NCBI GenBank assembly: GCA_002269645.1
Contig: NIVC01000292.1
Span: 1 to 64,000 of the forward strand
From: Macrostomum lignano
Lineage: Eukaryota
Direction of reading: 5' to 3'
Length of the DNA: 64,000 nucleotides
Positions 1 through 63,312 of the stretch are shown in pieces; positions within the stretch are counted from its first letter, which is position 1; every line of letters begins with the position of its first letter. A model generated the notes under the pieces. That model was not told where the DNA came from. It did no database searches and saw nothing but the letters and a program-made list of their open reading frames with translations. The translations under genes and the position numbers were made by a program.

Positions 1-3000
1 CTGCGTTAAATGCGTTAACGATACGTCGCTTACTCACTCGTCGGCGTCGGCGGCGGACTACTTTTCGGCGGACCACGCGCTTGCGATCACTCGTCGGCAG
101 AATGCGCTTGATCACACGTTTTGTCACGCGTCGTCCTTAATGACTCGGCGTCGGATGATGCGCTTGATCACGCGTCGTATCTGCGTCGGCCCTTAGTCAC
201 TCGTTTGCGGACGACTCGTCGGATGATGCGCTTGACCTTGCGGACGCTGCGTTTAATGCGTTTAACGATACGTCGCTTACTCACTCGTCGGCGTCGGCGG
301 CGGACTACTTTTCGGCGGACCACGCGCTTGCGGATCACTCGTCGGCAGATGCGCTTGATCACACGTTTTGTCACGCGTCGTCCCTTAATGACTCGGCGTC
401 GGATGATGCGCTTGATCACGCGTCGTATCTTGCGTCGGCCCTTAGTCACTCGTTTGCGGACGACTCGTCGGATGATGCGCTTGACCTTGCGGACGCTGCG
501 TTTAATGCGTTTAACGATACGTCGCTTACTCACTCGTCGGCGTCGGCGGCGGACTACTTTTCGGCGGACCACGCGCTTGCGGATCACTCGTCGGCAGATG
601 CGCTTGATCACACGTTTTGTCACGCGTCGTCCCTTAATGACTCGGCGTCGGATGATGCGCTTGATCACGCGTCGTATCTTGCGTCGGCCCTTAGTCACTC
701 GTTTGCGGACGACTCGTCGGATGATGCGCTTGACCTTGCGGACGCTGCGTTTAATGCGTTTAACGATACGTCGCTTACTCACTCGTCGGCGTCGGCGGCG
801 GACTACTTTTCGGCGGACCACGCGCTTGCGGATCACTCGTCGGCAGATGCGCTTGATCACACGTTTTGTCACGCGTCGTCCCTTAATGACTCGGCGTCGG
901 ATGATGCGCTTGATCACGCGTCGTATCTTGCGTCGGCCCTTAGTCACTCGTTTGCGGACGACTCGTCGGATGATGCGCTTGACCTTGCGGACGCTGCGTT
1001 TAATGCGTTTAACGATACGTCGCTTACTCACTCGTCGGCGTCGGCGGCGGACTACTTTTCGGCGGACCACGCGCTTGCGGATCACTCGTCGGCAGATGCG
1101 CTTGATCACACGTTTTGTCACGCGTCGTCCCTTAATGACTCGGCGTCGGATGATGCGCTTGATCACGCGTCGTATCTTGCGTCGGCCCTTAGTCACTCGT
1201 TTGCGGACGACTCGTCGGATGATGCGCTTGACCTTGCGGACGCTGCGTTTAATGCGTTTAACGATACGTCGCTTACTCACTCGTCGGCGTCGGCGGCGGA
1301 CTACTTTTCGGCGGACCACGCGCTTGCGGATCACTCGTCGGCAGATGCGCTTGATCACACGTTTTGTCACGCGTCGTCCCTTAATGACTCGGCGTCGGAT
1401 GATGCGCTTGATCACGCGTCGTATCTTGCGTCGGCCCTTAGTCACTCGTTTGCGGACGACTCGTCGGATGATGCGCTTGACCTTGCGGACGCTGCGTTTA
1501 ATGCGTTTAACGATACGTCGCTTACTCACTCGTCGGCGTCGGCGGCGGACTACTTTTCGGCGGACCACGCGCTTGCGGATCACTCGTCGGCAGATGCGCT
1601 TGATCACACGTTTTGTCACGCGTCGTCCCTTAATGACTCGGCGTCGGATGATGCGCTTGATCACGCGTCGTATCTTGCGTCGGCCCTTAGTCACTCGTTT
1701 GCGGACGACTCGTCGGATGATGCGCTTGACCTTGCGGACGCTGCGTTTAATGCGTTTAACGATACGTCGCTTACTCACTCGTCGGCGTCGGCGGCGGACT
1801 ACTTTTCGGCGGACCACGCGCTTGCGGATCACTCGTCGGCAGATGCGCTTGATCACACGTTTTGTCACGCGTCGTCCCTTAATGACTCGGCGTCGGATGA
1901 TGCGCTTGATCACGCGTCGTATCTTGCGTCGGCCCTTAGTCACTCGTTTGCGGACGACTCGTCGGATGATGCGCTTGACCTTGCGGACGCTGCGTTTAAT
2001 GCGTTTAACGATACGTCGCTTACTCACTCGTCGGCGTCGGCGGCGGACTACTTTTCGGCGGACCACGCGCTTGCGGATCACTCGTCGGCAGATGCGCTTG
2101 ATCACACGTTTTGTCACGCGTCGTCCCTTAATGACTCGGCGTCGGATGATGCGCTTGATCACGCGTCGTATCTTGCGTCGGCCCTTAGTCACTCGTTTGC
2201 GGACGACTCGTCGGATGATGCGCTTGACCTTGCGGACGCTGCGTTTAATGCGTTTAACGATACGTCGCTTACTCACTCGTCGGCGTCGGCGGCGGACTAC
2301 TTTTCGGCGGACCACGCGCTTGCGGATCACTCGTCGGCAGATGCGCTTGATCACACGTTTTGTCACGCGTCGTCCCTTAATGACTCGGCGTCGGATGATG
2401 CGCTTGATCACGCGTCGTATCTTGCGTCGGCCCTTAGTCACTCGTTTGCGGACGACTCGTCGGATGATGCGCTTGACCTTGCGGACGCTGCGTTTAATGC
2501 GTTTAACGATACGTCGCTTACTCACTCGTCGGCGTCGGCGGCGGACTACTTTTCGGCGGACCACGCGCTTGCGGATCACTCGTCGGCAGATGCGCTTGAT
2601 CACACGTTTTGTCACGCGTCGTCCCTTAATGACTCGGCGTCGGATGATGCGCTTGATCACGCGTCGTATCTTGCGTCGGCCCTTAGTCACTCGTTTGCGG
2701 ACGACTCGTCGGATGATGCGCTTGACCTTGCGGACGCTGCGTTTAATGCGTTTAACGATACGTCGCTTACTCACTCGTCGGCGTCGGCGGCGGACTACTT
2801 TTCGGCGGACCACGCGCTTGCGGATCACTCGTCGGCAGATGCGCTTGATCACACGTTTTGTCACGCGTCGTCCCTTAATGACTCGGCGTCGGATGATGCG
2901 CTTGATCACGCGTCGTATCTTGCGTCGGCCCTTAGTCACTCGTTTGCGGACGACTCGTCGGATGATGCGCTTGACCTTGCGGACGCTGCGTTTAATGCGT

Positions 3001-6000
3001 TTAACGATACGTCGCTTACTCACTCGTCGGCGTCGGCGGCGGACTACTTTTCGGCGGACCACGCGCTTGCGGATCACTCGTCGGCAGATGCGCTTGATCA
3101 CACGTTTTGTCACGCGTCGTCCCTTAATGACTCGGCGTCGGATGATGCGCTTGATCACGCGTCGTATCTTGCGTCGGCCCTTAGTCACTCGTTTGCGGAC
3201 GACTCGTCGGATGATGCGCTTGACCTTGCGGACGCTGCGTTTAATGCGTTTAACGATACGTCGCTTACTCACTCGTCGGCGTCGGCGGCGGACTACTTTT
3301 CGGCGGACCACGCGCTTGCGGATCACTCGTCGGCAGATGCGCTTGATCACACGTTTTGTCACGCGTCGTCCCTTAATGACTCGGCGTCGGATGATGCGCT
3401 TGATCACGCGTCGTATCTTGCGTCGGCCCTTAGTCACTCGTTTGCGGACGACTCGTCGGATGATGCGCTTGACCTTGCGGACGCTGCGTTTAATGCGTTT
3501 AACGATACGTCGCTTACTCACTCGTCGGCGTCGGCGGCGGACTACTTTTCGGCGGACCACGCGCTTGCGGATCACTCGTCGGCAGATGCGCTTGATCACA
3601 CGTTTTGTCACGCGTCGTCCCTTAATGACTCGGCGTCGGATGATGCGCTTGATCACGCGTCGTATCTTGCGTCGGCCCTTAGTCACTCGTTTGCGGACGA
3701 CTCGTCGGATGATGCGCTTGACCTTGCGGACGCTGCGTTTAATGCGTTTAACGATACGTCGCTTACTCACTCGTCGGCGTCGGCGGCGGACTACTTTTCG
3801 GCGGACCACGCGCTTGCGGATCACTCGTCGGCAGATGCGCTTGATCACACGTTTTGTCACGCGTCGTCCCTTAATGACTCGGCGTCGGATGATGCGCTTG
3901 ATCACGCGTCGTATCTTGCGTCGGCCCTTAGTCACTCGTTTGCGGACGACTCGTCGGATGATGCGCTTGACCTTGCGGACGCTGCGTTTAATGCGTTTAA
4001 CGATACGTCGCTTACTCACTCGTCGGCGTCGGCGGCGGACTACTTTTCGGCGGACCACGCGCTTGCGGATCACTCGTCGGCAGATGCGCTTGATCACACG
4101 TTTTGTCACGCGTCGTCCCTTAATGACTCGGCGTCGGATGATGCGCTTGATCACGCGTCGTATCTTGCGTCGGCCCTTAGTCACTCGTTTGCGGACGACT
4201 CGTCGGATGATGCGCTTGACCTTGCGGACGCTGCGTTTAATGCGTTTAACGATACGTCGCTTACTCACTCGTCGGCGTCGGCGGCGGACTACTTTTCGGC
4301 GGACCACGCGCTTGCGGATCACTCGTCGGCAGATGCGCTTGATCACACGTTTTGTCACGCGTCGTCCCTTAATGACTCGGCGTCGGATGATGCGCTTGAT
4401 CACGCGTCGTATCTTGCGTCGGCCCTTAGTCACTCGTTTGCGGACGACTCGTCGGATGATGCGCTTGACCTTGCGGACGCTGCGTTTAATGCGTTTAACG
4501 ATACGTCGCTTACTCACTCGTCGGCGTCGGCGGCGGACTACTTTTCGGCGGACCACGCGCTTGCGGATCACTCGTCGGCAGATGCGCTTGATCACACGTT
4601 TTGTCACGCGTCGTCCCTTAATGACTCGGCGTCGGATGATGCGCTTGATCACGCGTCGTATCTTGCGTCGGCCCTTAGTCACTCGTTTGCGGACGACTCG
4701 TCGGATGATGCGCTTGACCTTGCGGACGCTGCGTTTAATGCGTTTAACGATACGTCGCTTACTCACTCGTCGGCGTCGGCGGCGGACTACTTTTCGGCGG
4801 ACCACGCGCTTGCGGATCACTCGTCGGCAGATGCGCTTGATCACACGTTTTGTCACGCGTCGTCCCTTAATGACTCGGCGTCGGATGATGCGCTTGATCA
4901 CGCGTCGTATCTTGCGTCGGCCCTTAGTCACTCGTTTGCGGACGACTCGTCGGATGATGCGCTTGACCTTGCGGACGCTGCGTTTAATGCGTTTAACGAT
5001 ACGTCGCTTACTCACTCGTCGGCGTCGGCGGCGGACTACTTTTCGGCGGACCACGCGCTTGCGGATCACGCGTCGGCAGATGCGCTTGATCACACGTTTT
5101 GTCACGCGTCGTCCCTTAATGACTCGGCGTCGGATGATGCGCTTGATCACGCGTCGTATCTTGCGTCGGCCCTTAGTCACTCGTTTGCGGACGACTCGTC
5201 GGATGATGCGCTTGACCTTGCGGACGCTGCGTTTAATGCGTTTAACGATACGTCGCTTACTCACTCGTCGGCGTCGGCGGCGGACTACTTTTCGGCGGAC
5301 CACGCGCTTGCGGATCACTCGTCGGCAGATGCGCTTGATCACACGTTTTGTCACGCGTCGTCCCTTAATGACTCGGCGTCGGATGATGCGCTTGATCACG
5401 CGTCGTATCTTGCGTCGGCCCTTAGTCACTCGTTTGCGGACGACTCGTCGGATGATGCGCTTGACCTTGCGGACGCTGCGTTTAATGCGTTTAACGATAC
5501 GTCGCTTACTCACTCGTCGGCGTCGGCGGCGGACTACTTTTCGGCGGACCACGCGCTTGCGGATCACTCGTCGGCAGATGCGCTTGATCACACGTTTTGT
5601 CACGCGTCGTCCCTTAATGACTCGGCGTCGGATGATGCGCTTGATCACGCGTCGTATCTTGCGTCGGCCCTTAGTCACTCGTTTGCGGACGACTCGTCGG
5701 ATGATGCGCTTGACCTTGCGGACGCTGCGTTTAATGCGTTTAACGATACGTCGCTTACTCACTCGTCGGCGTCGGCGGCGGACTACTTTTCGGCGGACCA
5801 CGCGCTTGCGGATCACTCGTCGGCAGATGCGCTTGATCACACGTTTTGTCACGCGTCGTCCCTTAATGACTCGGCGTCGGATGATGCGCTTGATCACGCG
5901 TCGTATCTTGCGTCGGCCCTTAGTCACTCGTTTGCGGACGACTCGTCGGATGATGCGCTTGACCTTGCGGACGCTGCGTTTAATGCGTTTAACGATACGT

Positions 6001-8705
6001 CGCTTACTCACTCGTCGGCGTCGGCGGCGGACTACTTTTCGGCGGACCACGCGCTTGCGGATCACTCGTCGGCAGATGCGCTTGATCACACGTTTTGTCA
6101 CGCGTCGTCCCTTAATGACTCGGCGTCGGATGATGCGCTTGATCACGCGTCGTATCTTGCGTCGGCCCTTAGTCACTCGTTTGCGGACGACTCGTCGGAT
6201 GATGCGCTTGACCTTGCGGACGCTGCGTTTAATGCGTTTAACGATACGTCGCTTACTCACTCGTCGGCGTCGGCGGCGGACTACTTTTCGGCGGACCACG
6301 CGCTTGCGGATCACTCGTCGGCAGATGCGCTTGATCACACGTTTTGTCACGCGTCGTCCCTTAATGACTCGGCGTCGGATGATGCGCTTGATCACGCGTC
6401 GTATCTTGCGTCGGCCCTTAGTCACTCGTTTGCGGACGACTCGTCGGATGATGCGCTTGACCTTGCGGACGCTGCGTTTAATGCGTTTAACGATACGTCG
6501 CTTACTCACTCGTCGGCGTCGGCGGCGGACTACTTTTCGGCGGACCACGCGCTTGCGGATCACTCGTCGGCAGATGCGCTTGATCACACGTTTTGTCACG
6601 CGTCGTCCCTTAATGACTCGGCGTCGGATGATGCGCTTGATCACGCGTCGTATCTTGCGTCGGCCCTTAGTCACTCGTTTGCGGACGACTCGTCGGATGA
6701 TGCGCTTGACCTTGCGGACGCTGCGTTTAATGCGTTTAACGATACGTCGCTTACTCACTCGTCGGCGTCGGCGGCGGACTACTTTTCGGCGGACCACGCG
6801 CTTGCGGATCACTCGTCGGCAGATGCGCTTGATCACACGTTTTGTCACGCGTCGTCCCTTAATGACTCGGCGTCGGATGATGCGCTTGATCACGCGTCGT
6901 ATCTTGCGTCGGCCCTTAGTCACTCGTTTGCGGACGACTCGTCGGATGATGCGCTTGACCTTGCGGACGCTGCGTTTAATGCGTTTAACGATACGTCGCT
7001 TACTCACTCGTCGGCGTCGGCGGCGGACTACTTTTCGGCGGACCACGCGCTTGCGGATCACGCGTCGGCAGATGCGCTTGATCACACGTTTTGTCACGCG
7101 TCGTCCCTTAATGACTCGGCGTCGGATGATGCGCTTGATCACGCGTCGTATCTTGCGTCGGCCCTTAGTCACTCGTTTGCGGACGACTCGTCGGATGATG
7201 CGCTTGACCTTGCGGACGCTGCGTTTAATGCGTTTAACGATACGTCGCTTACTCACTCGTCGGCGTCGGCGGCGGACTACTTTTCGGCGGACCACGCGCT
7301 TGCGGATCACTCGTCGGCAGATGCGCTTGATCACACGTTTTGTCACGCGTCGTCCCTTAATGACTCGGCGTCGGATGATGCGCTTGATCACGCGTCGTAT
7401 CTTGCGTCGGCCCTTAGTCACTCGTTTGCGGACGACTCGTCGGATGATGCGCTTGACCTTGCGGACGCTGCGTTTAATGCGTTTAACGATACGTCGCTTA
7501 CTCACTCGTCGGCGTCGGCGGCGGACTACTTTTCGGCGGACCACGCGCTTGCGGATCACTCGTCGGCAGATGCGCTTGATCACACGTTTTGTCACGCGTC
7601 GTCCCTTAATGACTCGGCGTCGGATGATGCGCTTGATCACGCGTCGTATCTTGCGTCGGCCCTTAGTCACTCGTTTGCGGACGACTCGTCGGATGATGCG
7701 CTTGACCTTGCGGACGCTGCGTTTAATGCGTTTAACGATACGTCGCTTACTCACTCGTCGGCGTCGGCGGCGGACTACTTTTCGGCGGACCACGCGCTTG
7801 CGGATCACTCGTCGGCAGATGCGCTTGATCACACGTTTTGTCACGCGTCGTCCCTTAATGACTCGGCGTCGGATGATGCGCTTGATCACGCGTCGTATCT
7901 TGCGTCGGCCCTTAGTCACTCGTTTGCGGACGACTCGTCGGATGATGCGCTTGACCTTGCGGACGCTGCGTTTAATGCGTTTAACGATACGTCGCTTACT
8001 CACTCGTCGGCGTCGGCGGCGGACTACTTTTCGGCGGACCACGCGCTTGCGGATCACGCGTCGGCAGATGCGCTTGATCACACGTTTTGTCACGCGTCGT
8101 CCCTTAATGACTCGGCGTCGGATGATGCGCTTGATCACGCGTCGTATCTTGCGTCGGCCCTTAGTCACTCGTTTGCGGACGACTCGTCGGATGATGCGCT
8201 TGACCTTGCGGACGCTGCGTTTAATGCGTTTAACGATACGTCGCTTACTCACTCGTCGGCGTCGGCGGCGGACTACTTTTCGGCGGACCACGCGCTTGCG
8301 GATCACTCGTCGGCAGATGCGCTTGATCACACGTTTTGTCACGCGTCGTCCCTTAATGACTCGGCGTCGGATGATGCGCTTGATCACGCGTCGTATCTTG
8401 CGTCGGCCCTTAGTCACTCGTTTGCGGACGACTCGTCGGATGATGCGCTTGACCTTGCGGACGCTGCGTTTAATGCGTTTAACGATACGTCGCTTACTCA
8501 CTCGTCGGCGTCGGCGGCGGACTACTTTTCGGCGGACCACGCGCTTGCGGATCACTCGTCGGCAGATGCGCTTGATCACACGTTTTGTCACGCGTCGTCC
8601 CTTAATGACTCGGCGTCGGATGATGCGCTTGATCACGCGTCGTATCTTGCGTCGGCCCTTAGTCACTCGTTTGCGGACGACTCGTCGGATGATGCGCTTG
8701 ATATT
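1..8705. repeat. 249-bp tandem array, about 35 copies, nearly homogeneous
   Basis: Identical line starts at 241 and 5221 (20 x 249). The only substitutions noticed beyond position 181 are T>G at 5070, 7062 and 8058. Confidence 0.97.
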
Positions 8706-9131
8706 GCGACACTTGCAGATCATGTTTCCGTGAATTGTTACTGGGCTTCTGCGTTTTGGGATTCGGATGGGCTTTTTTGCTATTTGAGCCGCCCGTCGGG
8801 ATATGAATCCTTTTCTGAAGAAAGCGCGTTTAACAAGCCTTAGTCTGCGTTTTGTCAGTGGCTTCTTTTTTAGCTTTCGCATGACTTTTCGCTGGAACCT
8901 TTTGTTAATCTTTCTGAGCTTTTTTCCGAATCGCGTCTTTGCCTTGACTATCTTCTTTTTGAATCGCTGAACTCTGCGCTGGAGTCTGGCCTTGTACCTG
9001 AGGCGCATCTTTTGAAGAAACTTCTGGTACAACTGCTTCTTCTCTCGCAGCCTCTGGCGGTAGAGACGCAGCTTCATCAGCAGCAGCTTAGTGTTGTAGC
9101 GGGCCTTGTATATCCGCTTGGCAGCAGCCAT
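168..9131 (-). CDS. Giant Arg/Lys-rich (protamine-like) tandem-repeat protein: about 140 aa unique basic N-terminus plus about 34-35 copies of an 83-aa unit; probably continues past the window start
   Basis: ATG at 9131 in context AAAATCATGG, with TATAAA about 85 bp upstream. The frame is open through about 430 bp of unique sequence and then the array. Unit composition by hand count: R34 K14 V16 I12 T2 G2 S2 C1, no acidic residues. The stop at 168 follows indels in the first ~180 bp. Confidence 0.7.
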   Translation of the reverse strand: MAAAKRIYKARYNTKLLLMKLRLYRQRLREKKQLYQKFLQKMRLRYKARLQRRVQRFKKKIVKAKTRFGKKLRKINKRFQRKVMRKLKKKPLTKRRLRLVKRAFFRKGFISRRAAQIAKKPIRIPKRRSPVTIHGNMICKCRNIKRIIRRVVRKRVTKGRRKIRRVIKRIIRRRVIKGRRVTKRVIKRICRRVIRKRVVRRKVVRRRRRRVSKRRIVKRIKRSVRKVKRIIRRVVRKRVTKGRRKIRRVIKRIIRRRVIKGRRVTKRVIKRICRRVIRKRVVRRKVVRRRRRRVSKRRIVKRIKRSVRKVKRIIRRVVRKRVTKGRRKIRRVIKRIIRRRVIKGRRVTKRVIKRICRRVIRKRVVRRKVVRRRRRRVSKRRIVKRIKRSVRKVKRIIRRVVRKRVTKGRRKIRRVIKRIIRRRVIKGRRVTKRVIKRICRRVIRKRVVRRKVVRRRRRRVSKRRIVKRIKRSVRKVKRIIRRVVRKRVTKGRRKIRRVIKRIIRRRVIKGRRVTKRVIKRICRRVIRKRVVRRKVVRRRRRRVSKRRIVKRIKRSVRKVKRIIRRVVRKRVTKGRRKIRRVIKRIIRRRVIKGRRVTKRVIKRICRRVIRKRVVRRKVVRRRRRRVSKRRIVKRIKRSVRKVKRIIRRVVRKRVTKGRRKIRRVIKRIIRRRVIKGRRVTKRVIKRICRRVIRKRVVRRKVVRRRRRRVSKRRIVKRIKRSVRKVKRIIRRVVRKRVTKGRRKIRRVIKRIIRRRVIKGRRVTKRVIKRICRRVIRKRVVRRKVVRRRRRRVSKRRIVKRIKRSVRKVKRIIRRVVRKRVTKGRRKIRRVIKRIIRRRVIKGRRVTKRVIKRICRRVIRKRVVRRKVVRRRRRRVSKRRIVKRIKRSVRKVKRIIRRVVRKRVTKGRRKIRRVIKRIIRRRVIKGRRVTKRVIKRICRRVIRKRVVRRKVVRRRRRRVSKRRIVKRIKRSVRKVKRIIRRVVRKRVTKGRRKIRRVIKRIIRRRVIKGRRVTKRVIKRICRRVIRKRVVRRKVVRRRRRRVSKRRIVKRIKRSVRKVKRIIRRVVRKRVTKGRRKIRRVIKRIIRRRVIKGRRVTKRVIKRICRRVIRKRVVRRKVVRRRRRRVSKRRIVKRIKRSVRKVKRIIRRVVRKRVTKGRRKIRRVIKRIIRRRVIKGRRVTKRVIKRICRRVIRKRVVRRKVVRRRRRRVSKRRIVKRIKRSVRKVKRIIRRVVRKRVTKGRRKIRRVIKRIIRRRVIKGRRVTKRVIKRICRRVIRKRVVRRKVVRRRRRRVSKRRIVKRIKRSVRKVKRIIRRVVRKRVTKGRRKIRRVIKRIIRRRVIKGRRVTKRVIKRICRRVIRKRVVRRKVVRRRRRRVSKRRIVKRIKRSVRKVKRIIRRVVRKRVTKGRRKIRRVIKRIIRRRVIKGRRVTKRVIKRICRRVIRKRVVRRKVVRRRRRRVSKRRIVKRIKRSVRKVKRIIRRVVRKRVTKGRRKIRRVIKRIIRRRVIKGRRVTKRVIKRICRRVIRKRVVRRKVVRRRRRRVSKRRIVKRIKRSVRKVKRIIRRVVRKRVTKGRRKIRRVIKRIIRRRVIKGRRVTKRVIKRICRRVIRKRVVRRKVVRRRRRRVSKRRIVKRIKRSVRKVKRIIRRVVRKRVTKGRRKIRRVIKRIIRRRVIKGRRVTKRVIKRICRRVIRKRVVRRKVVRRRRRRVSKRRIVKRIKRSVRKVKRIIRRVVRKRVTKGRRKIRRVIKRIIRRRVIKGRRVTKRVIKRICRRVIRKRVVRRKVVRRRRRRVSKRRIVKRIKRSVRKVKRIIRRVVRKRVTKGRRKIRRVIKRIIRRRVIKGRRVTKRVIKRICRRVIRKRVVRRKVVRRRRRRVSKRRIVKRIKRSVRKVKRIIRRVVRKRVTKGRRKIRRVIKRIIRRRVIKGRRVTKRVIKRICRRVIRKRVVRRKVVRRRRRRVSKRRIVKRIKRSVRKVKRIIRRVVRKRVTKGRRKIRRVIKRIIRRRVIKGRRVTKRVIKRICRRVIRKRVVRRKVVRRRRRRVSKRRIVKRIKRSVRKVKRIIRRVVRKRVTKGRRKIRRVIKRIIRRRVIKGRRVTKRVIKRICRRVIRKRVVRRKVVRRRRRRVSKRRIVKRIKRSVRKVKRIIRRVVRKRVTKGRRKIRRVIKRIIRRRVIKGRRVTKRVIKRICRRVIRKRVVRRKVVRRRRRRVSKRRIVKRIKRSVRKVKRIIRRVVRKRVTKGRRKIRRVIKRIIRRRVIKGRRVTKRVIKRICRRVIRKRVVRRKVVRRRRRRVSKRRIVKRIKRSVRKVKRIIRRVVRKRVTKGRRKIRRVIKRIIRRRVIKGRRVTKRVIKRICRRVIRKRVVRRKVVRRRRRRVSKRRIVKRIKRSVRKVKRIIRRVVRKRVTKGRRKIRRVIKRIIRRRVIKGRRVTKRVIKRICRRVIRKRVVRRKVVRRRRRRVSKRRIVKRIKRSVRKVKRIIRRVVRKRVTKGRRKIRRVIKRIIRRRVIKGRRVTKRVIKRICRRVIRKRVVRRKVVRRRRRRVSKRRIVKRIKRSVRKVKRIIRRVVRKRVTKGRRKIRRVIKRIIRRRVIKGRRVTKRVIKRICRRVIRKRVVRRKVVRRRRRRVSKRRIVKRIKRSVRKVKRIIRRVVRKRVTKGRRKIRRVIKRIIRRRVIKGRRVTKRVIKRICRRVIRKRVVRRKVVRRRRRRVSKRRIVKRIKRSVRKVKRIIRRVVRKRVTKGRRKIRRVIKRIIRRRVIKGRRVTKRVIKRICRRVIRKRVVRRKVVRRRRRRVSKRRIVKRIKRSVRKVKRIIRRVVRKRVTKGRRKIRRVIKRIIRRRVIKGRRVTKRVIKRICRRVIRKRVVRRKVVRRRRRRVSKRRIVKRIKRSVRKVKRIIRRVVRKRVTKGRRKIRRVIKRIIRRRVIKGRRVTKRVIKRICRRVIRKRVVRRKVVRRRRRRVSKRRIVKRIKRSVRKVKRIIRRVVRKRVTKGRRRYDA

Positions 9132-9211
9132 GATTTTGCGCTTATCGATGGCGCACTGCTCAGGCGACCGCTTTGTAGCTGGAAACGCGGGTTTCTGGTT
9201 GTTGGCACAAG

Positions 9212-9219
9212 GTTTATAA
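9212..9219 (-). promoter_or_regulatory. Candidate TATA box of the basic-protein gene
   Basis: TATAAA on the minus strand about 85 bp upstream of ATG 9131. Confidence 0.4.
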
Positions 9220-9652
9220 AATAATTTTTATCATATTTAAAGCTGAGATTGGCAGCTTAGTAGTCTTTTGTCTACCTCTGAATATGTAGATTGGCAATTG
9301 CGACAAAACTATGTACTATATAACGTTGTGCTTTCTTTTTTCGAAAGCAACGTGCCTTGGATTTGATTGCGTCCCATATTTTGACATTCTGTGGCAACGC
9401 CAGCTGGAAAGCTTAAACTATTTGAATAAGCTCAGATTCCATTCGACAAATTACAGCTCGTTTTTTGACAAAGGGGATGTTAAACTTAAGAGTCAAATCC
9501 GACCACTTTAGCATTTGGGATCTGTATGGGGAGAGGGCCGGCAGCTCGGACAGGTGGGGCTCCTCCAGTTGCTGTTGGGCCAGTGTGGGGATGAGATGGA
9601 CTACGGCTCAGGGTTGGTGTTGGGGTTCAGGGACAAGCTTAGGGTTTATGGA

Positions 9653-10070
9653 ATGGAGTTTAGGGTTCAAGGGATGGAGTTTAGGGTTCAAGGGATGGAG
9701 TTTAGGGTTCAAGGGATGGAGTTTAAGGTTCAGGTGGTGGAGTTTAGGGTTCAGGTGGTGGAGTTTAGGGTTCAGGTGGTGGAGTTTAGGGTTCAGGTGG
9801 TGGAGTTTAGGGTTCAGGTGGTGGAGTGTTTAGGGTTCAGGTGGTGGAGTGTTTAGGGTTCAGGTGGTGGAGTTTAGGGTTCAGGTGGTGGAGTTTAGGG
9901 TTCAGGTGTTGGAGTTTAGGGTTCAGGTGGTGGAGTGTTTAGGGTTCAGGTGGTGGAGTTTAGGGTTCAGGTGGTGGAGTTTAGGGTTCAGGTGTTGGAG
10001 TTTAGGGTTCAGGTGGTGGAGTTTAGGGTTCAGGTGGTGGAGTTTAGGGTTCAGGTGGTGGAGTTTAGGG
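9653..10070. repeat. 21-bp minisatellite (GGAGTTTAGGGTTCAGGTGGT)
   Basis: About 19-20 tandem units with minor variants. Confidence 0.93.
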
Positions 10071-10243
10071 TTTTGTCTCTTCTGGACCTTCTGGACACGG
10101 AGAAATGGGATAAATTGGGATTTCATGTGATCGGAAAACTTTCCTGTGTTATTTTGAGTTGAATATGTTTTCATTGTGTTTTCCAGGACTCCAGTATACA
10201 GCCCTTTATGAAACATTGTACCAAAACTTGCCGTTAGTTACGC

Positions 10244-10523
10244 AAGAATGTAAGGCATGCACGTTTAGGAGTGACGGAAGAATGTAAGGCATGCACGTTT
10301 AGGAGTGACGGAAGAATGTAAGGCGTGCACGTTTAGGAGTGACGGAAGAATGTAAGGCATGCACGTTTAGGAGTGACGGAAGAATGTAAGGCATGCACGT
10401 TTAGGAGTGACGGAAGAATGTAAGGCATGCACGTTTAGGAGTGACGGAAGAATGTAAGGCATGCACGTTTAGGAGTGACGGAAGAATGTAAGGCATGCAC
10501 GTTTAGGAGTGACGGAAGAATGT
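10244..10523. repeat. 34-bp minisatellite, about 8 copies
   Basis: ACGTTTAGGAGTGACGGAAGAATGTAAGGCATGC recurs at 10261, 10295, 10329 and onward. Confidence 0.93.
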
Positions 10524-11108
10524 TAAGCGTTAAGTTGTGGTTTTTTCACGTGGAATCCCCATTTATCCAATTTCTCCCCACAGAGATCCCCAAATGCTAA
10601 AGTGGTCGGGCTTTCGGCATAACGGGAGATGTTTGGCTCCAAATGAAGGGATTGGCGTAGAGAAATCGGGACCCAATTATTCAGGCTCCATTTTGACTCC
10701 TAAGTTTACATCCTCTTTAATCTTTATTGACAGTAAATTGTCAGAAAAGGTTGAAGTTGTCAATTTCCTGTGCCAGTTTTCTTAAAAAAGGAACAATATA
10801 AGGAGATCCCATAGATTAGGCTCTTGCATAATCTATGGGAAAAGATACACGAGCGACACGAGACTGGCCACGTATCACTACTTGGTGTGCGCTTGCTGGG
10901 CTTCATAAAAGGAATAACATTTCCACTATTTCTGCTCCAGCGCTATACGGATGCCGTCAGATAGTTATGGGTCTCACTGTGCTTGGTACTCCTACTTTAG
11001 TTGCAAATAGAAGGCTTGGATTTCAAGGCTAGCGTTTGAGCTGGACACTCTTGGACTGCATTTGAGTACGAGGCATCAGGGCACCGTTGGGAAAGAGGCG
11101 GCCGTGTT

Positions 11109-11915
11109 CTAACGGAACTCACCCGCTTTGAAGCCGGTTTTGAGAATCAGGTTGCGCCAGAACCCTCCGCAGGTTTGCACGCGGGATCCGTTGCACGGCT
11201 TGTTGCACTCCGAGCTCTGGGCGCGGCCGTGCCTACCGTAGCTGTTGCCGCACCGGCACTCGTTGCCGTTCTGCACTCCGGCGTAGCTGAACCGCAGCTT
11301 GAAGCACTGGGCAGCGCAGGCCGCAGGCGTCACGGAGCCCAGCCTGGCCAGCTTGGGCAGGTCGCGCGGCTTCGCCTTGTCCTTGAAGCAGCCGACGCTG
11401 GCGGCTTCTTGATTGCCTCTGCGAGGATTTGTTGTGTTACTGAGTTAGGGGGGGGGGGCTTTCTCACCCGGGGATTTCGGTCGCGGTGGACACACTGTAG
11501 GGAAATTCCAGTCCTACAGTGAACATCCCAGAAAGACCGGCATTATTAGCAGTGTATAAAAACCTGTTGCGATAGAAAAGAACAGGAAAGAGTGTCCAAT
11601 GCGGGGGAAGAAGCGTCCAAGGCGGGGAAAGAGTGTCTAAGGGGAGGGAGTGTCCGAAAGACAGGAAAGATGCCCAAAGGACCAGAGGACAGGAAGTGTC
11701 CAAAGAACAGGACAGGACGCAGTGGAACATTTAGCATGCATTTACCGGTATGCATGAGATTCGCCAATAGGCAAGAGATGTGTAAGAGCGATTGAAACAA
11801 AGGACACAGGCTAACACAACAGCTTACTCTTGGCTGGAAGGCTGGATAAGCTGGCACCATTGGCGGACATGGCTGCCCAGACAGCGAGGATCAGCAGCAG
11901 CAGCCAGAGCCTCAT
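11109..11915 (-). CDS. Small secreted WSC-domain protein (copy 1), spliced
   Basis: Exon 11915-11828 encodes a signal peptide (MRLWLLLLILAVWAAMSANG) followed by a GTAAGC donor. Exon ~11418-11109 encodes SVGCFKD..RDL..TPAACAAQC..YAGVQNGNECRCG..CNKPC..CGG (WSC pattern). A possible 27-nt exon lies at 11494-11468; splice phases are not fully reconciled. Confidence 0.85.
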
Positions 11916-13119
11916 GTTGAGTCCGGCCGCCGCTTGCGAAGCAATGTTTGCTGATGACAACCGGCCAGCAATGCAGTTGCCTGGTTGAGATTTTTTGCAG
12001 CAGAGTTTCGTTTGTCAAAACAGACAAGCTGGCTGTGGAGTTTCTCGCTCCGCAGGTTCTCTCTTCTGCCAACGGTTGATCCAAATGGGGGACTCACCGT
12101 GGTTAGCTGGGGGGACTTCGGAGAGAAGTGAGGCTTCAGGCGAAGAGCCAGCTGGCTGGTGGGCCGGCGGTTTTATCGCGCTGCCGATACCAGCATTGCG
12201 GCCTTCGTGCTGCGTCGATCGCGCCACCACCCGCCTGACCGCCCCCCCCCTCCTTACCCTCCGCGGACCATCGCCGTTCCTGCGAAGGAAGCGCTACAAA
12301 AAACCAGCTGGCCTCGAGACCGAGCTGCCGCTGCTTTTGTTTTGCTCTTCCGGAGCCTCCCGGGCTTGCAGCCGTCGACAGCAACGGCGGGGAGGTGGGG
12401 GTGGGGGCACTGCTGCAGTCCTCTACTCTCCGCCCCTCTCCGCCAGGCCACCCACGGCCGAGAGTTGCTGATTCAGCAGGTGGAGCTCCTGGCCAGCCCC
12501 CAAGCCCCCCGCTCTGCAGTAATCGATTCAGCGATACTTCAGCAAGTTGGCAGCCGCAACGCTGCGCTGTCTTGGGTGGTGCCGGAATGACGAGCAACTG
12601 CAACCACTGGCTGCGCCCAGCAGTGCCCAACTCGCATTACCAACCCCCCCCCTCAGTCCAGAGCTGGCAGAGTCCTGCACCCGCAAATTGGAGAACTCGA
12701 AAGTCATAAACAGCGCCAGAGAGAATCGATCAGCCTCTCCCTGCTCAACTCAACCACCCAGAGCTCCAGTTCGAGGATAAATTCCAGGGCATCGAAAGCT
12801 GCCGAAAACAAAAAATAAACAACAACAGAAGACGCAACACTTTAACTGAAAAGTGAACAGCAAACTAAACAAATGCCGTGTGCGGATATCAATATCAAAC
12901 AGTCGCGTTTTATCTGATTATGAATTCTTTAACAAACTCAATCCGTGAAGCAGCTGAATTAACTATCAGCACTGACTAGTTGGGACACTGCGAATGAAAT
13001 AGTAAAACTGCAAGCACTGCGATAGCGCAAGCTTTGAAAATAAGTAGCTCGTAATATCGAATGCTCTTCGCGATTAGTAAGTGCAATAAGAGAAAACTTA
13101 TTGAAACACGGAAACAAGG

Positions 13120-14062
13120 AGACACGAGTGAAACACGAGTGAGACACGAGTGAGACACGATTGACACACGAGTGAGACACGAGTGAGACACGGGTGAGAC
13201 ACGGGTGAGACACGATTGACACACGAGTAAGACACGAGTGAGACACGGGTGAGACACGGGTGAGACACGGGTGAGACACGGGTGAGACACGATTGACACA
13301 CGAGTAAGACACGAGTGAGACACGGGTGAGACACGGGTGAGACACGGGTGAGACACGATTGACACACGAGTAAGACACGAGTGAGACACGGGTGAGACAC
13401 GGGTGAGACACGGGTGAGACACGATTGACACACGAGTAAGACACGAGTGAGACACGGGTGAGACACGGGTGAGACACGATTGACACACGAGTAAGACACG
13501 AGTGAGACACGGGTGAGACACGGGTGAGACACGGGTGAGACACGATTGACACACGAGTAAGACACGAGTGAGACACGAGTGAGACACGGGTGAGACACGG
13601 GTGAGACACGAGTGAGACACGAGTGAGACACGAGTGAGACACGAGTGAGACACGAGTGAGACACGAGTGAGACACGATTGACACACGAGTGAGACACGAG
13701 TGAGACACGATTGACACACGAGTGAGACACGAGTGAGACACGGGTGAGACACGAGTGAGACACGAGTAAGACACGAGTGAGACACGAGTGAGACACGAGT
13801 GAGACATGGGTGAGACACGAGTGAGACACGAGTGAGACACGAGTGAGACACGAGTGAGACACGAGTGAGACACGAGTGAGACACGAGTGAGACACGATTG
13901 ACACACGAGTGAGACACGAGTGAGACACGATTGACACACGAGTGAGACACGAGTGAGACACGGGTGAGACACGAGTGAGACACGAGTAAGACACGAGTGA
14001 GACACGAGTGAGACACGAGTGAGACATGGGTGAGACACGAGTGAGACACGAGTGAGACACGA
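13120..14062. repeat. 11-bp minisatellite (GTGAGACACGA and variants)
   Basis: Direct inspection; it explains the three overlapping Cys/Ser/Val pseudo-ORFs. Confidence 0.95.
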
Positions 14063-14488
14063 GAGGGACACAGTTAGCTGAGTGAGCAAAAGTTGAGCCA
14101 GATAAACAAAAAGGTTGCATTTTAATATTTTAGCAAATAAACAAAAATTTTGTTGAACGGACGCTAAAGCTTACAGAAAAACATTTCTTAGAATCTAAAC
14201 TAAAAGCTAAATTCGCATTGGAATTGACGAGTAAAAAATAAACTGTTAAAGGAACTAATCTACCAGCTAGTGGCAAAAAGGGCAAAAAGTTGAATGAAGA
14301 GTTGTATAAAATTTCTAATATTTTGATAACAAAAATTACTCTCAAGGAATTTAGCTCTGCAAATAAAAAAGAAGAGCTCACGGAGAACTTCCATCCTGGA
14401 ACTATACATAAAATATCTGCTTGGAAAAATGTTTAGAAATAGCAGAATAATAAAGCTGAATGCTAAGCAGCAAAAGTAATAGATAATC

Positions 14489-21654: not shown

Positions 21655-24600
21655 ATGTCTGGATGCATCAGACAAATAAATACTGTCCTTTTTATTGCAT
21701 TTGTACTTGTCAATTTATTTGCTTTGGATTTGGCTTATAGACCAAAGGTAAGTATAAAGCTTTTTTGTTTTGTTTTTTTTTCATTTTCAGCCTTTTTTAT
21801 TGGAATTGTATTGATTAAAATTAAATTGTGATTAAATTTAAAGGGCCTGTCAATTTGTCTTAGCTTTTAAAGTGGGGTCTGAGTAACCCATGCTATGTAT
21901 ACAAATGATGGGTGCTGGTCATTTTGTCAATTGGTATTTTATCAAATAGTTGACAAAAAAGTGATTATTTGGCAGGGGTAGCAGTATTTGCTATTGATGA
22001 AGTGACCAAGTTTAGAGGTCTTATTGATTGGTCAGTTGATAAAGTGATTAAGAATAAGATCCACACTCCGGATCATGTAGTATATACCCAAACATTTAGG
22101 CATGCATTGGCCTTGTATGCCAAAAGTAGGCATGCATAGTTGGCATATATCACTCCTAAGAAAATATACCTGGCGTGCACTTTGTAGAATCATGCAGAAA
22201 AATTATTGTAGAGTAGAAGAAAGATAAAAAAGTTCATTTTTAAGCATAAATTTCCTGCTTTCCAGGTTTTTAAGCTTGTAATAAGGCATTTAAACAACTC
22301 TTTGCATGTATCAATTTTCCACTATAAATAGTATCACCAAAAAAGCAGAAAAATTAACCAAATTATTTGTCAAAAAGGGTCTATTATGCAATGAAAAAAG
22401 GTAATTTATTGTCACAATACTGGCAGAGTTTTAAGAATGGGTGTACACTTAATTTTTTTGGCATGCATTTGTAACTATCAATTTTTGTTCGGGCATGCAC
22501 CTATCATGATCCAGACTATAGACTAAGATCAATGGCTTCCCAATTGACAAAATGAAATGAATTTTAAATTATAGTTATTCTTGAAATAGCCTTTCTTTTC
22601 TTTTGTTATAGTTCAATGAATTTTTATATTTACAAAATTCAAATATACATACGTATTTTAGAAACAATATGTCAATTGCAGTATGGTACAATTTGAAATT
22701 TATTAACCTGCTTTACCCACTTCATATATGTAAGAGTTTAATAGAAGAATTCTTGGCGCACATCCAGCCATGAACATATACACAATATTGCATTGCATAA
22801 TATATACATAATGCATAATTTATTAAGTGACCATCATTTTAAAGTATTTGAAAAGGTAATTTTTAGTATATTGGACTATAATACTATATTCTTATCTAAG
22901 AATATCTACCTAGATCTAATAAAATATGACATGATTTTCATTTAAGTCTAAATTAAACATTGGTTTAGTAAATTTGTCCAAATGCCCCTTTGTTTGAATT
23001 ACTTTTTCTGTTAACAATATAATCTAGGGTCTAGATTGTATAATTTGGTATATGCTAGAGCTAAAATCCTATCATAGCTAAATGCATACCTATGTATGCC
23101 AAAAATGGAAAATTGCAATCTTTTAGATAACAATCACTAAATAAAGTGACAACCAACTAAATAAATATTTTAAATAGTATAAAGTAGAGCCTTTAAAACA
23201 CTAATCTTATTACAAATAGTTTCTAGATATTCAAGAGTTTAAGCATTCAGGGAGCCAATGATTCTAGCACCTCTTATAAATTAGCACCTTAATGTATTGT
23301 ATTAGTTTGGGATAACAATAACAATCATTATAATATGAAAATTGCCCTAAAATGATTAAGTTGCAAAAGTATAGCTTTTCTTGTCTTCAGCCTTTAGTCT
23401 TGTCTTTAGTCATGCTGAGTCTTAAACCATTTGTATGCAAAAAAAATCGATAAAATCGAGCAACAGAAAAAAGAAGCTCTAATTAAATATTTCTAAATTC
23501 CCACCTAGGCTACAGAATTTGCTGGAGTTCTGCACATCCGCCTGGACTATTACCGGCAGAAGGACCCAAACCACTGTGACCAGGGCCTGCTTGCCATTAA
23601 GGATCTGTGCGATCCCTACTTCATTGTGACTGCTGGCCCTATCGGCAGGAGAGCTCTGACCAGCTTCGAGTCCAAGCCAGTGGACAATGCGCACCGAGTG
23701 CTTCAGTTTGGCAACAAAATCGGACAGCTCTCAAATCCGCTGCGATTCTGGTTTAAAGACTCTGATGAACTGGGTGACCTGCTGGACATTAAGGTGCGGA
23801 GTTGATGCAGCTGCAGGGATGCTGGGGCTGAGTGGTGCAGACACTGATGGGCTGGGGATTGAGGTGCAGAGTTGATGCAGCTGCAGGGATGCTGGGGCTG
23901 AGTGGTGCAGACACTGATAAGCTGGGGATTGAGGTGTGAAGCTGATGCAGCTGCAGGGATGCTGGATATTGAGGTGTTGAGCTGATGCAGCTGCAGGGAT
24001 GCTGGAGCTGAGTGGTGCAGACACTGTTGAGCTGGGGATTGAGGTTTGGAGCTGATGCAGCTGCAGGGATGCTGGATATTGAGGTGTTAAGCTGATGCAG
24101 CTGCAGGGATGCTGGATATTGAGGTGTTAAGCTGATGCAGCTGCAGGGATGCTGGATATTGAGGTGTTAAGCTGATGCAGCTGCAGGGATGCTGGGGCTG
24201 AGTGGTGCAGACACTGATAAGCTGTGCCTAATCCCAATCCTGACCTCTCCCACAGGTCACTGTGAAAGACCACGACCCGCTGACCCCCGACGAGCTAATA
24301 GAGCAGTTCCGCTGGACGCTGCCGCTCGCCAACCTCACAACTGGGGTGCTGGACTCCCGCTTCATCGTCAGCTTCAACGCAACGCAGCCGAGCTCCGCCC
24401 TGCTGACCGGCGCGCTGGCCAGGGGCGACCAGCTGTCCCTGCACGCCTGGGTCTCCTGCCGGCCTGGCCGCGCCGGCCCCGCCTGTCGAGTCGCCTGCAC
24501 GCCCGGTCGGCCGGCCGAGGAGGGCGGCTTCGGCTGCGACTTGGCAACCGGCCAGCGCGTCTGCCTGCCCGGCTTCCTCGACCCCGACGCCGGCTGCTCG

Positions 24601-28544: not shown

Positions 28545-29969
28545 ATGAGCCTACTACCTCAGCCATCTCCGTTCGACCCGGAAAAGGATCCATCGAACGT
28601 GGCGAAAAGATGGGAGGACTACCTACAGGAAATCACGCTGTGGTTGGACGCCTGCGGAATAACAGACGACAAAAGAAAGCGATCTGCATTTCTGCTCTGT
28701 GCCGGTGTGAAAGTTCGAAAAATACTAGAAAACCTGGACAACACAGGATCTGACTTCAAAACGGCTCAGACCCGACTGGACGAGTACTTCAAGGACGGAA
28801 CAAACGTGGTATACGAAACCTTCAACCTGCTGCAAATCAGGCAAAAGGAAGGTGAGGCCATTGACTCTTTCCATGGCCGACTGCGGGAAGCAGCGAAATA
28901 CTGCGACCTCGAGGTATCAACCACTGATGCAACAACCAAACTGTCCTATGAAGACCGAATAATTCGCGATCTGGTAGTCCTAAACTGCAACTCAAACAGC
29001 CTCAGACGGAAGCTCATCCAAAAAGGGTCAACTCTGACTCTGAAGAGAGCTATCGAAATAGGAAGATGCTTCGAATCGACGAACAGCCAGAGCGGAGTCA
29101 TTGAGAAGCACGTCTCCGACCCGAGCACCGTCAATTCAGTTGGACAGTCCAAAGGACCAAGAAGATTCCCTAAATCGAAGAAAACTGGAACTGACAGCAA
29201 GCAGTTTCCCAGAAGAAAGTCCAGTGCTCGCGATGTCTGTAGCCGCTGTGGAAGAAGCTCACATACAGCAGAAAACTGCTATGCGCGCAACGATACTTGC
29301 AAGAAGTGCAATAAGGTGGGACATCATGCCAAGATGTGCAGAACCAAACTACCAACCAAAAGTAAACTTCAAGTTTACGAAACGAAAGAATCGGGCGTGA
29401 CTGAATCGTCAGACTTAGAGGAGATTCATACGATAGCAAGCGTCAGCGCGAAGAACGGTGCAACAAAGCAAGCTGTCATCAACGGCAGAAAATGCGATGT
29501 ACTAATTGACTCGGGCTCCAATCTAAATCTAATATCCTACAACACAGTTGCTAAAATGGTGAGTCCGGATCAGATTAACTCGAGATCACATATCAAGATT
29601 TGGTCGTACGGGGCCAGGACCCCCATCGAAACCCAAGGCACAGTACATCTGGAAGTTACTCTCAACGAAAGTACACAGCAAATGAAGTTTCACATAACTC
29701 CAGTAAAGGATGCACGCACTATTATCGGATTTGAGGACGCCTTCAAGCACGGTTTCCTGACATGGGGCTCGGATAAAAGCTGCCTTCATATCGAGAACAT
29801 TCAGCAGCCAACGCAAGTGATTCTGGAAGAGTTCAAGGATGTCTTCCGTGGAATAGGAAAACTCAAAGACAGCAAAGTTAAGATTCGCCTGAAGGAGAAC
29901 GCCAATCCTATTGTTCATCCACCATCGCGTATACCAGCACACCTTCACCAGAAACTGCCGAAGAACTAG
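28545..29969 (+). CDS. Gypsy Gag-protease ORF
   Basis: Two CCHC knuckles (CSRCGRSSHTAENC, CKKCNKVGHHAKMC) and an aspartic protease motif LIDSGS. Confidence 0.9.
   Translation: MSLLPQPSPFDPEKDPSNVAKRWEDYLQEITLWLDACGITDDKRKRSAFLLCAGVKVRKILENLDNTGSDFKTAQTRLDEYFKDGTNVVYETFNLLQIRQKEGEAIDSFHGRLREAAKYCDLEVSTTDATTKLSYEDRIIRDLVVLNCNSNSLRRKLIQKGSTLTLKRAIEIGRCFESTNSQSGVIEKHVSDPSTVNSVGQSKGPRRFPKSKKTGTDSKQFPRRKSSARDVCSRCGRSSHTAENCYARNDTCKKCNKVGHHAKMCRTKLPTKSKLQVYETKESGVTESSDLEEIHTIASVSAKNGATKQAVINGRKCDVLIDSGSNLNLISYNTVAKMVSPDQINSRSHIKIWSYGARTPIETQGTVHLEVTLNESTQQMKFHITPVKDARTIIGFEDAFKHGFLTWGSDKSCLHIENIQQPTQVILEEFKDVFRGIGKLKDSKVKIRLKENANPIVHPPSRIPAHLHQKLPKN

Positions 29970-55062: not shown

Positions 55063-63312
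<8,250 letters not shown>

Follow-up and report, generated by a model that had tools for sequence, protein, structure and literature searches.

Two polycationic proteins described from flatworm adhesive systems are very large and rich in repeats. The adhesive protein Mlig-ap1 of Macrostomum lignano carries over 3,600 amino acids (aa) of lysine/arginine-rich (KR-rich) repeats with an isoelectric point (pI) above 14, and attachment is prevented by heparin (Wunderer et al. 2019, PMC6410801). Tmed-ap3 of Theama mediterranea, at about 3,700 aa, has a signal peptide followed by a sequence that is nearly all polycationic low-complexity repeat (PMC9229212). In another secretory tissue of M. lignano, the prostate, small secreted WSC proteins are among the commonest classes of tissue-limited transcripts, which are candidates for seminal-fluid components (n = 76; Weber et al. 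2018, PMC5977470). Here we analyse a stretch of 64,000 nucleotides (nt) of the M. lignano genome (assembly Mlig_3_7, GCA_002269645.1; contig NIVC01000292.1, positions 1 to 64,000 of the forward strand; hereafter the window), which opens on a tandem array of a 249-bp unit that can be read on the minus strand as one very long open reading frame (ORF). On balance, we take this region to be the 3' (last) exon of a real gene, transcript cluster Mlig029036 of the Mlig_3_7 annotation. Its product may well be a secreted polycation of at least 3,131 aa, with a net charge of about +1,700, that is anchored by a WSC domain and would bind polyanionic glycans in glue, mucus or seminal fluid. The ap3-type trait, a signal peptide (here identified by eye) with thousands of polycationic repeat residues, is present at this locus.

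Tandem Repeats Finder reported a single array over window positions 1-8708 (period 249, 35.0 copies, 99% matches, score 17337). The minus-strand ORF at 168-9131 is 2,987 aa long; its first codon is an ATG at 9131, which is followed by 144 unique basic codons and then by 34 complete 83-aa units, and it ends with a TGA at 170-168. The composition of the unit is R34 K14 V16 I12 T2 G2 S2 C1, which amounts to 57.8% lysine plus arginine, 34% valine plus isoleucine, 2.4% each of glycine and serine, no histidine, and not one acidic or aromatic residue. At the DNA level 31 of the 34 units are identical and the other three each carry a single CGA to CGC change, so that variation of the array within the window is synonymous only. 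An initial annotation, made from the letters alone, had described a giant polycationic 'poly-protamine' of at least about 2,990 aa built from about 35 identical 83-aa units. Its residue counts for the unit, with one Cys and no acidic or aromatic residues, agree with ours, as does its estimate of about 140 unique basic codons ahead of the array. Of the units, 34 are complete copies and the 35th is partial and carries five indels and a mismatch. The length it gave corresponds to the ORF but is neither a firm minimum nor a firm length, as the stop at 170-168 is unreliable (see below).

The open frame through the array alone is weak evidence of coding. The unit has three open frames out of six, and among dinucleotide-preserving shuffles of the unit (n = 5,000) a given frame was open in about 13%, with three or more frames open in 2%. 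Because an open frame by itself proves little here, the case for coding must rest on context. Two antisense frames are also open through the array, one rich in Arg, Thr and Leu and the other acidic and rich in Asp, Ala and Ser; one of the two is the 2,870-aa ORF at 121-8733 on the plus strand. These look like by-products of a restricted codon set and not like genes: the unit contains no TTA, CTA or TCA codons, which read as stops on the other strand, and by our reasoning this omission is what leaves one antisense frame open.

The context is provided by two further exons upstream of the array (Table 1). The unique part of the last exon has a single open frame, with 0 stops against 2-12 in the other five frames. 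The acceptor of this exon (ttccag/) lies at 9180-9179 and the exon begins at 9178, while the first in-frame stop 5' of the acceptor is at about 9230. The junctions of the three exons have canonical GT-AG sites, and the reading phase matches across both junctions. Because the frame stays open to the acceptor and splices in frame to the WSC and signal-peptide exons, the ATG at 9131 is an internal Met. The WSC exon matches Pfam PF01822 at 69.9 bits (cutoff 27.8; E = 2.2e-19) over profile positions 2-82 of 82, for the translation of 11124-11423 on the minus strand, and its 8 Cys lie between SVGCFKD and TCGGFW, the number conserved in the WSC family. Exon 1 was placed at the coordinates given in Table 1 by tblastn with UniProt A0A1I8F1Q9 and A0A1I8GNH5, and is identical in two further copies of the locus, L001 and L002, described below; its signal peptide was assessed by eye, with an n-region MR, a 14-residue hydrophobic core, and A-x-G ahead of the cut. 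The predicted product therefore runs from a signal peptide through one WSC domain and about 160 aa of unique basic sequence into an array of at least 34 units, and as the window reads, with one missing C added (see below), it has 3,131 aa and a net charge of +1,719.

This gene structure alters the starting point of the initial annotation, which had begun the protein at the ATG behind a TATA box and had seen no signal peptide. The ATG does open the ORF, but it is internal to the spliced protein and the TATA-like stretch lies in intron 2; likewise this exon has no signal peptide of its own, but an exon 2.7 kb upstream encodes one and is spliced to it in frame. An analogy with the flatworm adhesive Mlig-ap1 had been set aside for want of a signal peptide and of lectin, vWD or EGF domains; the first of these grounds no longer holds.

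Table 1. Features of the gene and its array in the window. A slash marks a splice site or the predicted signal-peptide cut.
Feature	Position	Strand	Details
Exon 1, start codon and signal-peptide-like N-terminus	11828..11915	(-)	MRLWLLLLILAVWAAMSANG/ASLSSLPAK; donor AG/GTAAGC
WSC-domain exon	11123..11418	(-)	8 Cys; acceptor ...ctcgcag/AGG, donor GCGG/GTGAGT
Intron 2	9179..11122	(-)	GT...AG borders; holds 21-mer minisatellite 9654-10072, 34-mer minisatellite 10236-10523 and a TATA-like stretch
Unique part of last exon	8700..9178	(-)	ATKRSPEQCAIDKRKI, then 144 aa (40% K+R); internal Met at 9131
34 complete 249-bp units, in frame with unique part of last exon	234..8699	(-)	each encodes KRIIRRVVRKRVTKGRRKIRRVIKRIIRRRVIKGRRVTKRVIKRICRRVIRKRVVRRKVVRRRRRRVSKRRIVKRIKRSVRKV, net charge +48
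35th unit, partial, runs off window start	1..233	(-)	1 mismatch plus 5 homopolymer indels of one base each, all in the first ~180 nt of the window

Database models agree with this structure up to the array. A protein search with the unique part and two units gave only two matches, A0A1I8F1Q9 and A0A1I8GNH5, both M. lignano entries named 'WSC domain-containing protein', and an exhaustive phmmer search of 1.84 billion representative proteins returned the same two models only. Both begin MRLWLLLLILAVWAAMSANGASL..., continue with the WSC domain and then read ...GFKAATKRSPQQCAIDKRKIMAAAKRIYK...; in UniProt and GenBank models alike, ATKRSP..MAAAKRIYK is joined to MRLW...SANG and the WSC domain. Model P0002 is 97% identical to the unique part of the last exon, which also agrees with the P0005 variant. 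The 90% identity cluster of P0002 adds PAA63193.1 (BOX15_Mlig029036g1) and PAA48566.1 (Mlig029036g11), each of 213 aa and labelled '3' partial', together with UniProt A0A1I8HKC0, which has the window's own variant residues. Exact look-ups of the 2,987-aa ORF, of a 164-aa array model and of models P0001 and P0002 found no record in the protein collection. Neither the basic part nor the repeat had a Pfam match at E <= 1, and no chain of the Protein Data Bank (PDB) did so at E <= 1. A homology search with the repeat unit only gave 8,000 word-sharing candidates, none with E <= 0.001, a result that is uninformative since composition bias probably masks matches.

Expression of the gene was assessed from the published annotation and from mass spectrometry. 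Gene models of Mlig_3_7 in GenBank were made from RNA sequencing (RNA-seq) data, by a strand-filtered, genome-guided assembly and then TransDecoder. This annotation places a 213-aa 3'-partial model (signal peptide, WSC domain and basic sequence) on the gene, and it has gene-strand models inside the arrays, six of 164 aa in L002 and one of 565 aa in L001. All three of the 164-aa models that were translated are in the R/K/V/I frame. That frame also opens the raw span of the 565-aa model, which then meets stops. At the protein level, Dataset S2 of Wunderer et al. 2019 (footprint mass spectrometry, PMC6410801) lists the peptides FSYAGVQNGNECR, LGSVTPAACAAQCFK and VQTCGGFWR, each unique to one transcript, and all three are exact matches to the WSC exon of the window. 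The entry to which they belong is an 840-nt transcript, 280 aa, 32.5095 kDa, pI 11.78 (PMC6410801). From Met1 to about Asn280 the fused protein has a mass of 32.50-32.52 kDa and a pI of 11.8, whereas the signal peptide and WSC domain alone have a pI of 10.2. Because mass and pI match the fusion, the 840-nt de novo transcript probably also encodes it and ends a few codons before the array, and the label of a 3' untranslated region (3'UTR) on this entry is at odds with the mass match. Stop-containing translations of the L001 type misfit the reported mass and pI, while uninterrupted ones come within 7-9 Da, which is inexact; the 840-nt transcript may still be a truncated, stop-containing paralogue.

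The two other genome copies, L001 (NIVC01001863.1) and L002 (NIVC01004115.1), are the loci of the two 213-aa GenBank models in the same assembly. Both have the exons and flanking minisatellites as in the window, and in both the 249-bp array, of 22 and 37 units respectively, reaches contig position 1. No difference separates the window from L001 in its 5' flank, exon 1, intron 1 or WSC exon; from L002 the window diverges by 1-2% in intron 2 and the exon-3 unique part. Over the 3' part of the exon-3 unique region L001 gave no meaningful alignment. Thirty-two of the 37 L002 units are identical to the window unit, many L001 units carry A51C (Lys to Gln) plus many indels, and two of the three copies have 30-34 consecutive intact units. 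Set against L002, the window shows 3 synonymous differences and 1 non-synonymous difference in the WSC exon. For the unique basic exon the counts are 3 synonymous and 6 non-synonymous, with zero indels over 479 nt, and the introns show 10 gap events over 1,843 nt. These comparisons suggest that the WSC domain may be constrained and the basic region fast-evolving or loosely constrained, yet with its frame kept, with numbers too small for a firm test.

The unit itself suggests how the array may have grown. The 249-nt unit and a 57-nt sub-repeat within it (80% identity, no indels) are both multiples of three and are in phase, and the sub-repeat is older than the array units. Codons for Ile, Val and Lys in the unit end in C or G, as preferred in the neighbouring exons. 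The halves of the unit are alike beyond composition (z = 3.0), and likewise the unit and the unique part of the exon (z = 2.6). Together these features point to a putative growth of the array by repeated in-frame duplication of the gene's own coding sequence.

The copies differ in further ways. At about 12620-12905 in L001, a degenerate repeat unit full of indels takes the place of the final ~40 unique codons ahead of the array (GFISRRAAQ...CRNI), and two 2-nt insertions give a stop (...KRRLNGLS-stop); this is either a rearranged paralogue or a poor consensus. Residue 13 after the internal Met (window 9095-9093, minus strand) has three states, one per copy: Asn in the window, Gln in L001, Lys in L002. 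The two minisatellites of intron 2, the 21-mer with its TTAGGG-like core and the 34-mer, vary in copy number among the three genome copies, and L002 has an additional array of about 800 bp in intron 1.

The end of the ORF is insecure. The first indel in the 35th unit is the deletion of an A at unit position 51, near window position 182, which leads to ...KGRRRYDA and the TGA at 170-168. This same deletion is found in L002 units 31-34 and 37 (5 units) and in 4 L001 units, and unit position 51 lies in a codon that varies between Lys and Gln. The deletion may be genuine, marking a variant unit that closes the ORF after 30-34 copies, or it may be a consensus artefact where AAG-type and CAG-type reads mix. 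The error-dense first ~180 nt of the window look like a poorly polished contig end, and with the array at coordinate 1 and the gene on the minus strand, as in L001 and L002, the window start would be a third contig end inside the array. We therefore treat the copy number, the C-terminus and the stop at 168 as unreliable: because all three genome copies end inside the array, the array length, the C-terminus and the 3' end of the gene are not fixed.

Within the unit, the hydrophobic residues are paired and recur every ~4.6 residues, in the pattern ++hh++hh+++hh, with a spectral peak at 78 degrees. Compared with shuffled controls, the helical hydrophobic moment is above expectation (z = +3.8) and the beta-type moment below it (z = -2.5). 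Single-sequence AlphaFold2 predicts a single long helix across ~90 residues from the internal Met onward, with a predicted local distance difference test score (pLDDT) of 84-97; it models the units as low-confidence helical segments (pLDDT about 40) and places zero strands. Beta-strand amphipathicity of the unit was rejected on the beta-type moment. This result, the pairing of the hydrophobic residues and the lack of AlphaFold2 strands count against the proposal in the initial annotation that Val/Ile alternate with Arg/Lys for a beta-type binding of DNA. The repeat chain is probably disordered alone and would become ordered on a polyanion.

We can now consider how such a protein might act. It would enter the secretory pathway and, outside the cell or in secretory granules, would form a very long polycation that its WSC domain could tether to glycan. 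The array, if it is translated whole, would condense or bind polyanions by charge, among them sulfated or acidic glycans, glycocalyx and mucus, and the Val/Ile pairs, the single Cys of each unit and the N-terminal helix could contribute cohesion through hydrophobic, disulfide or helix-helix contacts. The KR regions of Mlig-ap1, and ap3, are proposed to act in this way in flatworm glue; judging by sequence, the present protein would be analogous to them and not homologous. The tissue may be that of the adhesive or mucus glands, or of the prostate glands, and the footprint peptides point to glue or mucus. The alternative suggestion of the initial annotation, a polycationic granule or structural protein, fits the signal peptide, the WSC domain and the WSC peptides in the footprint proteome.

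The likeness to Mlig-ap1 (PMC6410801) is one of kind. Both are proteins of the same species, secreted (in our case by prediction), with thousands of residues of tandem, extremely basic low-complexity repeats; both have a carbohydrate-binding module and are refractory to trypsin in mass spectrometry, and for both a charge-based action is proposed. However, the KR motifs of Mlig-ap1 (KSRKVN in 84 copies, SRKPRRKNRKSRKP in 56 and KNNKRRVRKARKNN in 25) are absent from all six frames of the window, its repeat peptides KSRKVN, SRKPRRKN and KNNKRRV are not in the window, and there is no sequence similarity. Its core domains (C-type lectin, vWD/C8/TIL and EGF) are absent upstream of and within the array, the part that was covered, and the module found here is instead WSC. 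The basic residues are combined with 34% Val/Ile here and with Asn, Ser, Pro and Gly in Mlig-ap1, which moreover lies on another scaffold, scaf1170. Identity with Mlig-ap1 was rejected on these differences in motifs, domains and scaffold.

In size and architecture the nearest match is ap3, a stand-alone secreted protein known as Tmed-ap3 and, in Minona ileanae, as Mile-ap3 (PMC9229212). It differs in that the residues 'GRKHS' make up 88% of ap3, while the present unit has 2% Gly, no His and 34% Val/Ile; ap3 also has no WSC domain, and no homology was detectable among the 1.84 billion representative proteins. Expression of ap3 in adhesive glands has been demonstrated; from the present gene, three WSC peptides are listed in a footprint dataset that also includes cytosolic and nuclear proteins. 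The prostate-limited Mlig-pro WSC transcripts (PMC5977470) resemble our gene in size, at 700-1,100 nt against its 840-nt transcript; none of these candidates is described with a polycationic repeat tail, and no link between them and this gene was found by identifier or sequence. The name Mlig029036 has no mention in the searchable main texts or in the supplements of PMC5816591, and a literature search combining Macrostomum with the WSC domain found no paper.

The main rival to a secreted polycation, which we judge rather unlikely, is an unselected expansion: the gene would encode a small secreted WSC protein with a basic tail of about 250-300 aa, and part of its last exon would have expanded recently into a minisatellite, essentially without selection, perhaps with inflation or homogenisation by the assembly. 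The array would then be translated incidentally, be truncated early, or lie in a 3'UTR behind a real frameshift, and would be in frame as the unit happens to divide by three. Several observations weigh against our preferred interpretation, and many of them favour this one. The genome is saturated with minisatellites, with about 40 arrays in these 64 kb and simple and tandem repeats forming 15% of the genome, and a duplicated piece of exon stays in frame with a chance of 1 in 3, on top of the 13% chance, given above, that a given frame of a shuffled unit is open. The 34 identical units imply a very recent expansion or homogenisation, and units at 100% identity leave no time for selection on them. 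The 6 non-synonymous against 3 synonymous differences of the unique basic exon are near neutral, with a ratio of non-synonymous to synonymous rates (dN/dS) near 1.

The transcript and protein data raise further difficulties of the same kind. Published transcripts end before the array, both the 213-aa partial model and the de novo transcript, which has just 840 nt and is labelled with a 3'UTR (PMC6410801). No read or transcript spans the array, and because all three genome copies end inside it, none of them fixes the stop codon, the poly(A) site or the 3' end. The footprint sample also has VCP, histone H4, RPL12 and tektin (PMC6410801), and because cytosolic and nuclear proteins share the sample, presence in it is not proof of secretion. 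No peptide from the basic part appeared in mass spectrometry, where trypsin would shred that part. The unit lacks Asp, Glu, Phe, Tyr, Trp and Leu and so offers no site to V8 or chymotrypsin, and the Val/Ile cutters elastase and thermolysin would be suited to it. Outside M. lignano, neither phmmer nor a search seeded with the WSC model found a relative with the basic tail, the latter gaining only an unrelated two-WSC protein that lacks one.

Finally, the frame is broken in several copies by early frameshifts or stops. There is a stop before the array in L001, models P0002 and P0005 are shifted, and the WSC exon of the window is one C short: in a three-locus alignment the C-run at 11401-11400 is CC in the window against CCC in L001 and L002. 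If the annotated acceptor is used, the missing C breaks the frame of the WSC exon after ~58 aa, and the frame is restored by one added C or by use of an AG 2 bases downstream as the acceptor. The recurrent 1-nt deletion that gives KGRRRYDA-stop is present in three of three arrays. Such shifts among the copies may be PacBio errors or real decay. Against an unselected expansion, most of the frameshifts are changes in homopolymer length of the kind typical of PacBio continuous long read (CLR) assemblies, and they cluster at contig ends. One unit is common to the arrays of three diverged genome copies, and two of these keep their run of 30-34 consecutive intact units. The unit also contains its older, in-frame internal sub-repeat and resembles the unique coding part, and the annotation built from RNA-seq has ORF models on the same strand within the arrays.

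A more specific form of the secreted polycation we regard as unlikely. In it, an intact, secreted, WSC-anchored protein of more than 3,100 aa, with a charge of at least +1,700, about 58% Arg plus Lys and 34% Val/Ile, would be an overlooked, independent, charge-based component of the reversible glue or of mucus, a functional ap3 counterpart that arose separately, or a component of seminal fluid, perhaps cut at RRRRRR into dozens of identical 83-aa peptides. Such cutting is central to a further alternative that we find quite improbable, in which the protein is a polyprotein precursor cleaved once per unit by furin-type convertases at RRRRRR/RIKR, freeing at least 34 copies of a hyper-cationic peptide of about 83 aa that would act independently with, for example, an antimicrobial or a sperm- or glycan-coating role. 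Each unit does have an RRRRRR stretch and an RIKR motif of furin-type consensus, with overlapping R-X-K/R-R motifs at residues 61-66 and 75-78, and the signal peptide also fits this idea. The architecture of identical units resembles that of multi-copy peptide precursors. However, there are no spacers or acidic pro-regions between the units, dibasic pairs are so dense that cutting would yield heterogeneous fragments, and a charge of +48 in 83 aa far exceeds that of known antimicrobial peptides.

A non-coding satellite with a chance ORF, unrelated to the adjoining gene, is very improbable. It would account for the three open frames of the unit, for the long array ORFs that are common in the window and for a repeat unit with neither homologues nor Pfam matches, but the array follows seamlessly, and in the same frame, on a unique exon with a single open frame and an in-phase splice to WSC. 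The restricted codon set explains the open antisense frames by our reasoning, and the GenBank array models lie on the gene strand, three of them translating in the R/K/V/I frame at 164 aa. A literature search for satellite DNA found nothing on a 249-bp repeat. The original proposal of a sperm poly-protamine, translated without a signal peptide from the internal ATG at 9131 by way of its own promoter or of trans-splicing at the 9179 acceptor, is scarcely credible: it draws on a repeat that is Arg-rich and free of acidic residues with one regularly spaced Cys per unit, on the good context of that ATG (AAAATCATGG) and on spliced-leader trans-splicing, widespread enough in M. lignano to make an independent downstream cistron conceivable, but in every database model that reaches the 5' end this exon is fused in frame behind a signal peptide and an extracellular WSC domain, the fused protein agrees in mass and pI with the mass-spectrometry entry, protamine and H1 domains are absent, the length of at least 3,131 aa compares with tens to a few hundred and is at least 15 times that of any sperm nuclear basic protein, 34% Val/Ile is unlike protamines, and a literature search found no link to M. 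lignano sperm.

Minisatellites are extremely dense across the window, with 121 Tandem Repeats Finder rows (units 4-112 bp) in the separate arrays counted above. Many of these yield ORFs of 300-400 aa in two or three frames, as at 12959-14089, 50099-51382 and 61831-62964; a long array ORF arises easily in this genome. Near-perfect tetranucleotide arrays at 49347-49713 and 55250-55511 consist of (TGAC) in 92 copies at 100% identity and (TTAG) in 65 copies at 98%. A second WSC exon lies at 51104-51373 (+), with a Pfam score of 63 bits and 43% identity to the first; it shares one ORF with a 15-bp minisatellite at 50236-51082 (56 copies) and is followed by an ORF with DM9 repeats at 51861-52319 (+). 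The whole region, 50174-52319 (+), could be a second secreted WSC gene, a paralogue some 40 kb distant on the opposite strand. Other coding sequence comprises an EGF-like exon at 24262-24900 (+), retroelement fragments at 28545-30469 (+), where a gag-like ORF of 474 aa (zinc knuckles, aspartyl protease) precedes a piece of a reverse transcriptase, DEAD-box helicase exons (DEAD, Helicase_C) at 32296-36082 (-), whose introns are full of 15-, 17- and 22-bp arrays, and exons of an M13 (neprilysin-like) peptidase at 55646-56344 and 61331-61768 (+) with several kb of minisatellites between them.

What was already known of this gene are truncated 'hypothetical' or 'WSC domain-containing' models, and its repeat part is undescribed. 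The locus shows how annotation becomes truncated: the models in databases end ahead of the array or at its first repeat, and all available contigs break off within it. With 83 aa, a charge of +48, paired Val/Ile, a single Cys and no acidic residue, the unit is a compact design found in nature that may interest work on coacervates and bio-inspired adhesives. By analogy, the predicted protein would belong with the giant secreted polycations of flatworms. The current charge-based model of reversible flatworm adhesion has a polycationic cohesive protein displaced by a secreted anion, and in M. lignano the polycation role has so far been given to the KR flanks of Mlig-ap1 only. If our interpretation is correct, a second giant polycation, WSC-bearing and unrelated in sequence, would be a new testable component of this model; if the gene is expressed in the prostate, its product would instead be a new component of the seminal fluid.

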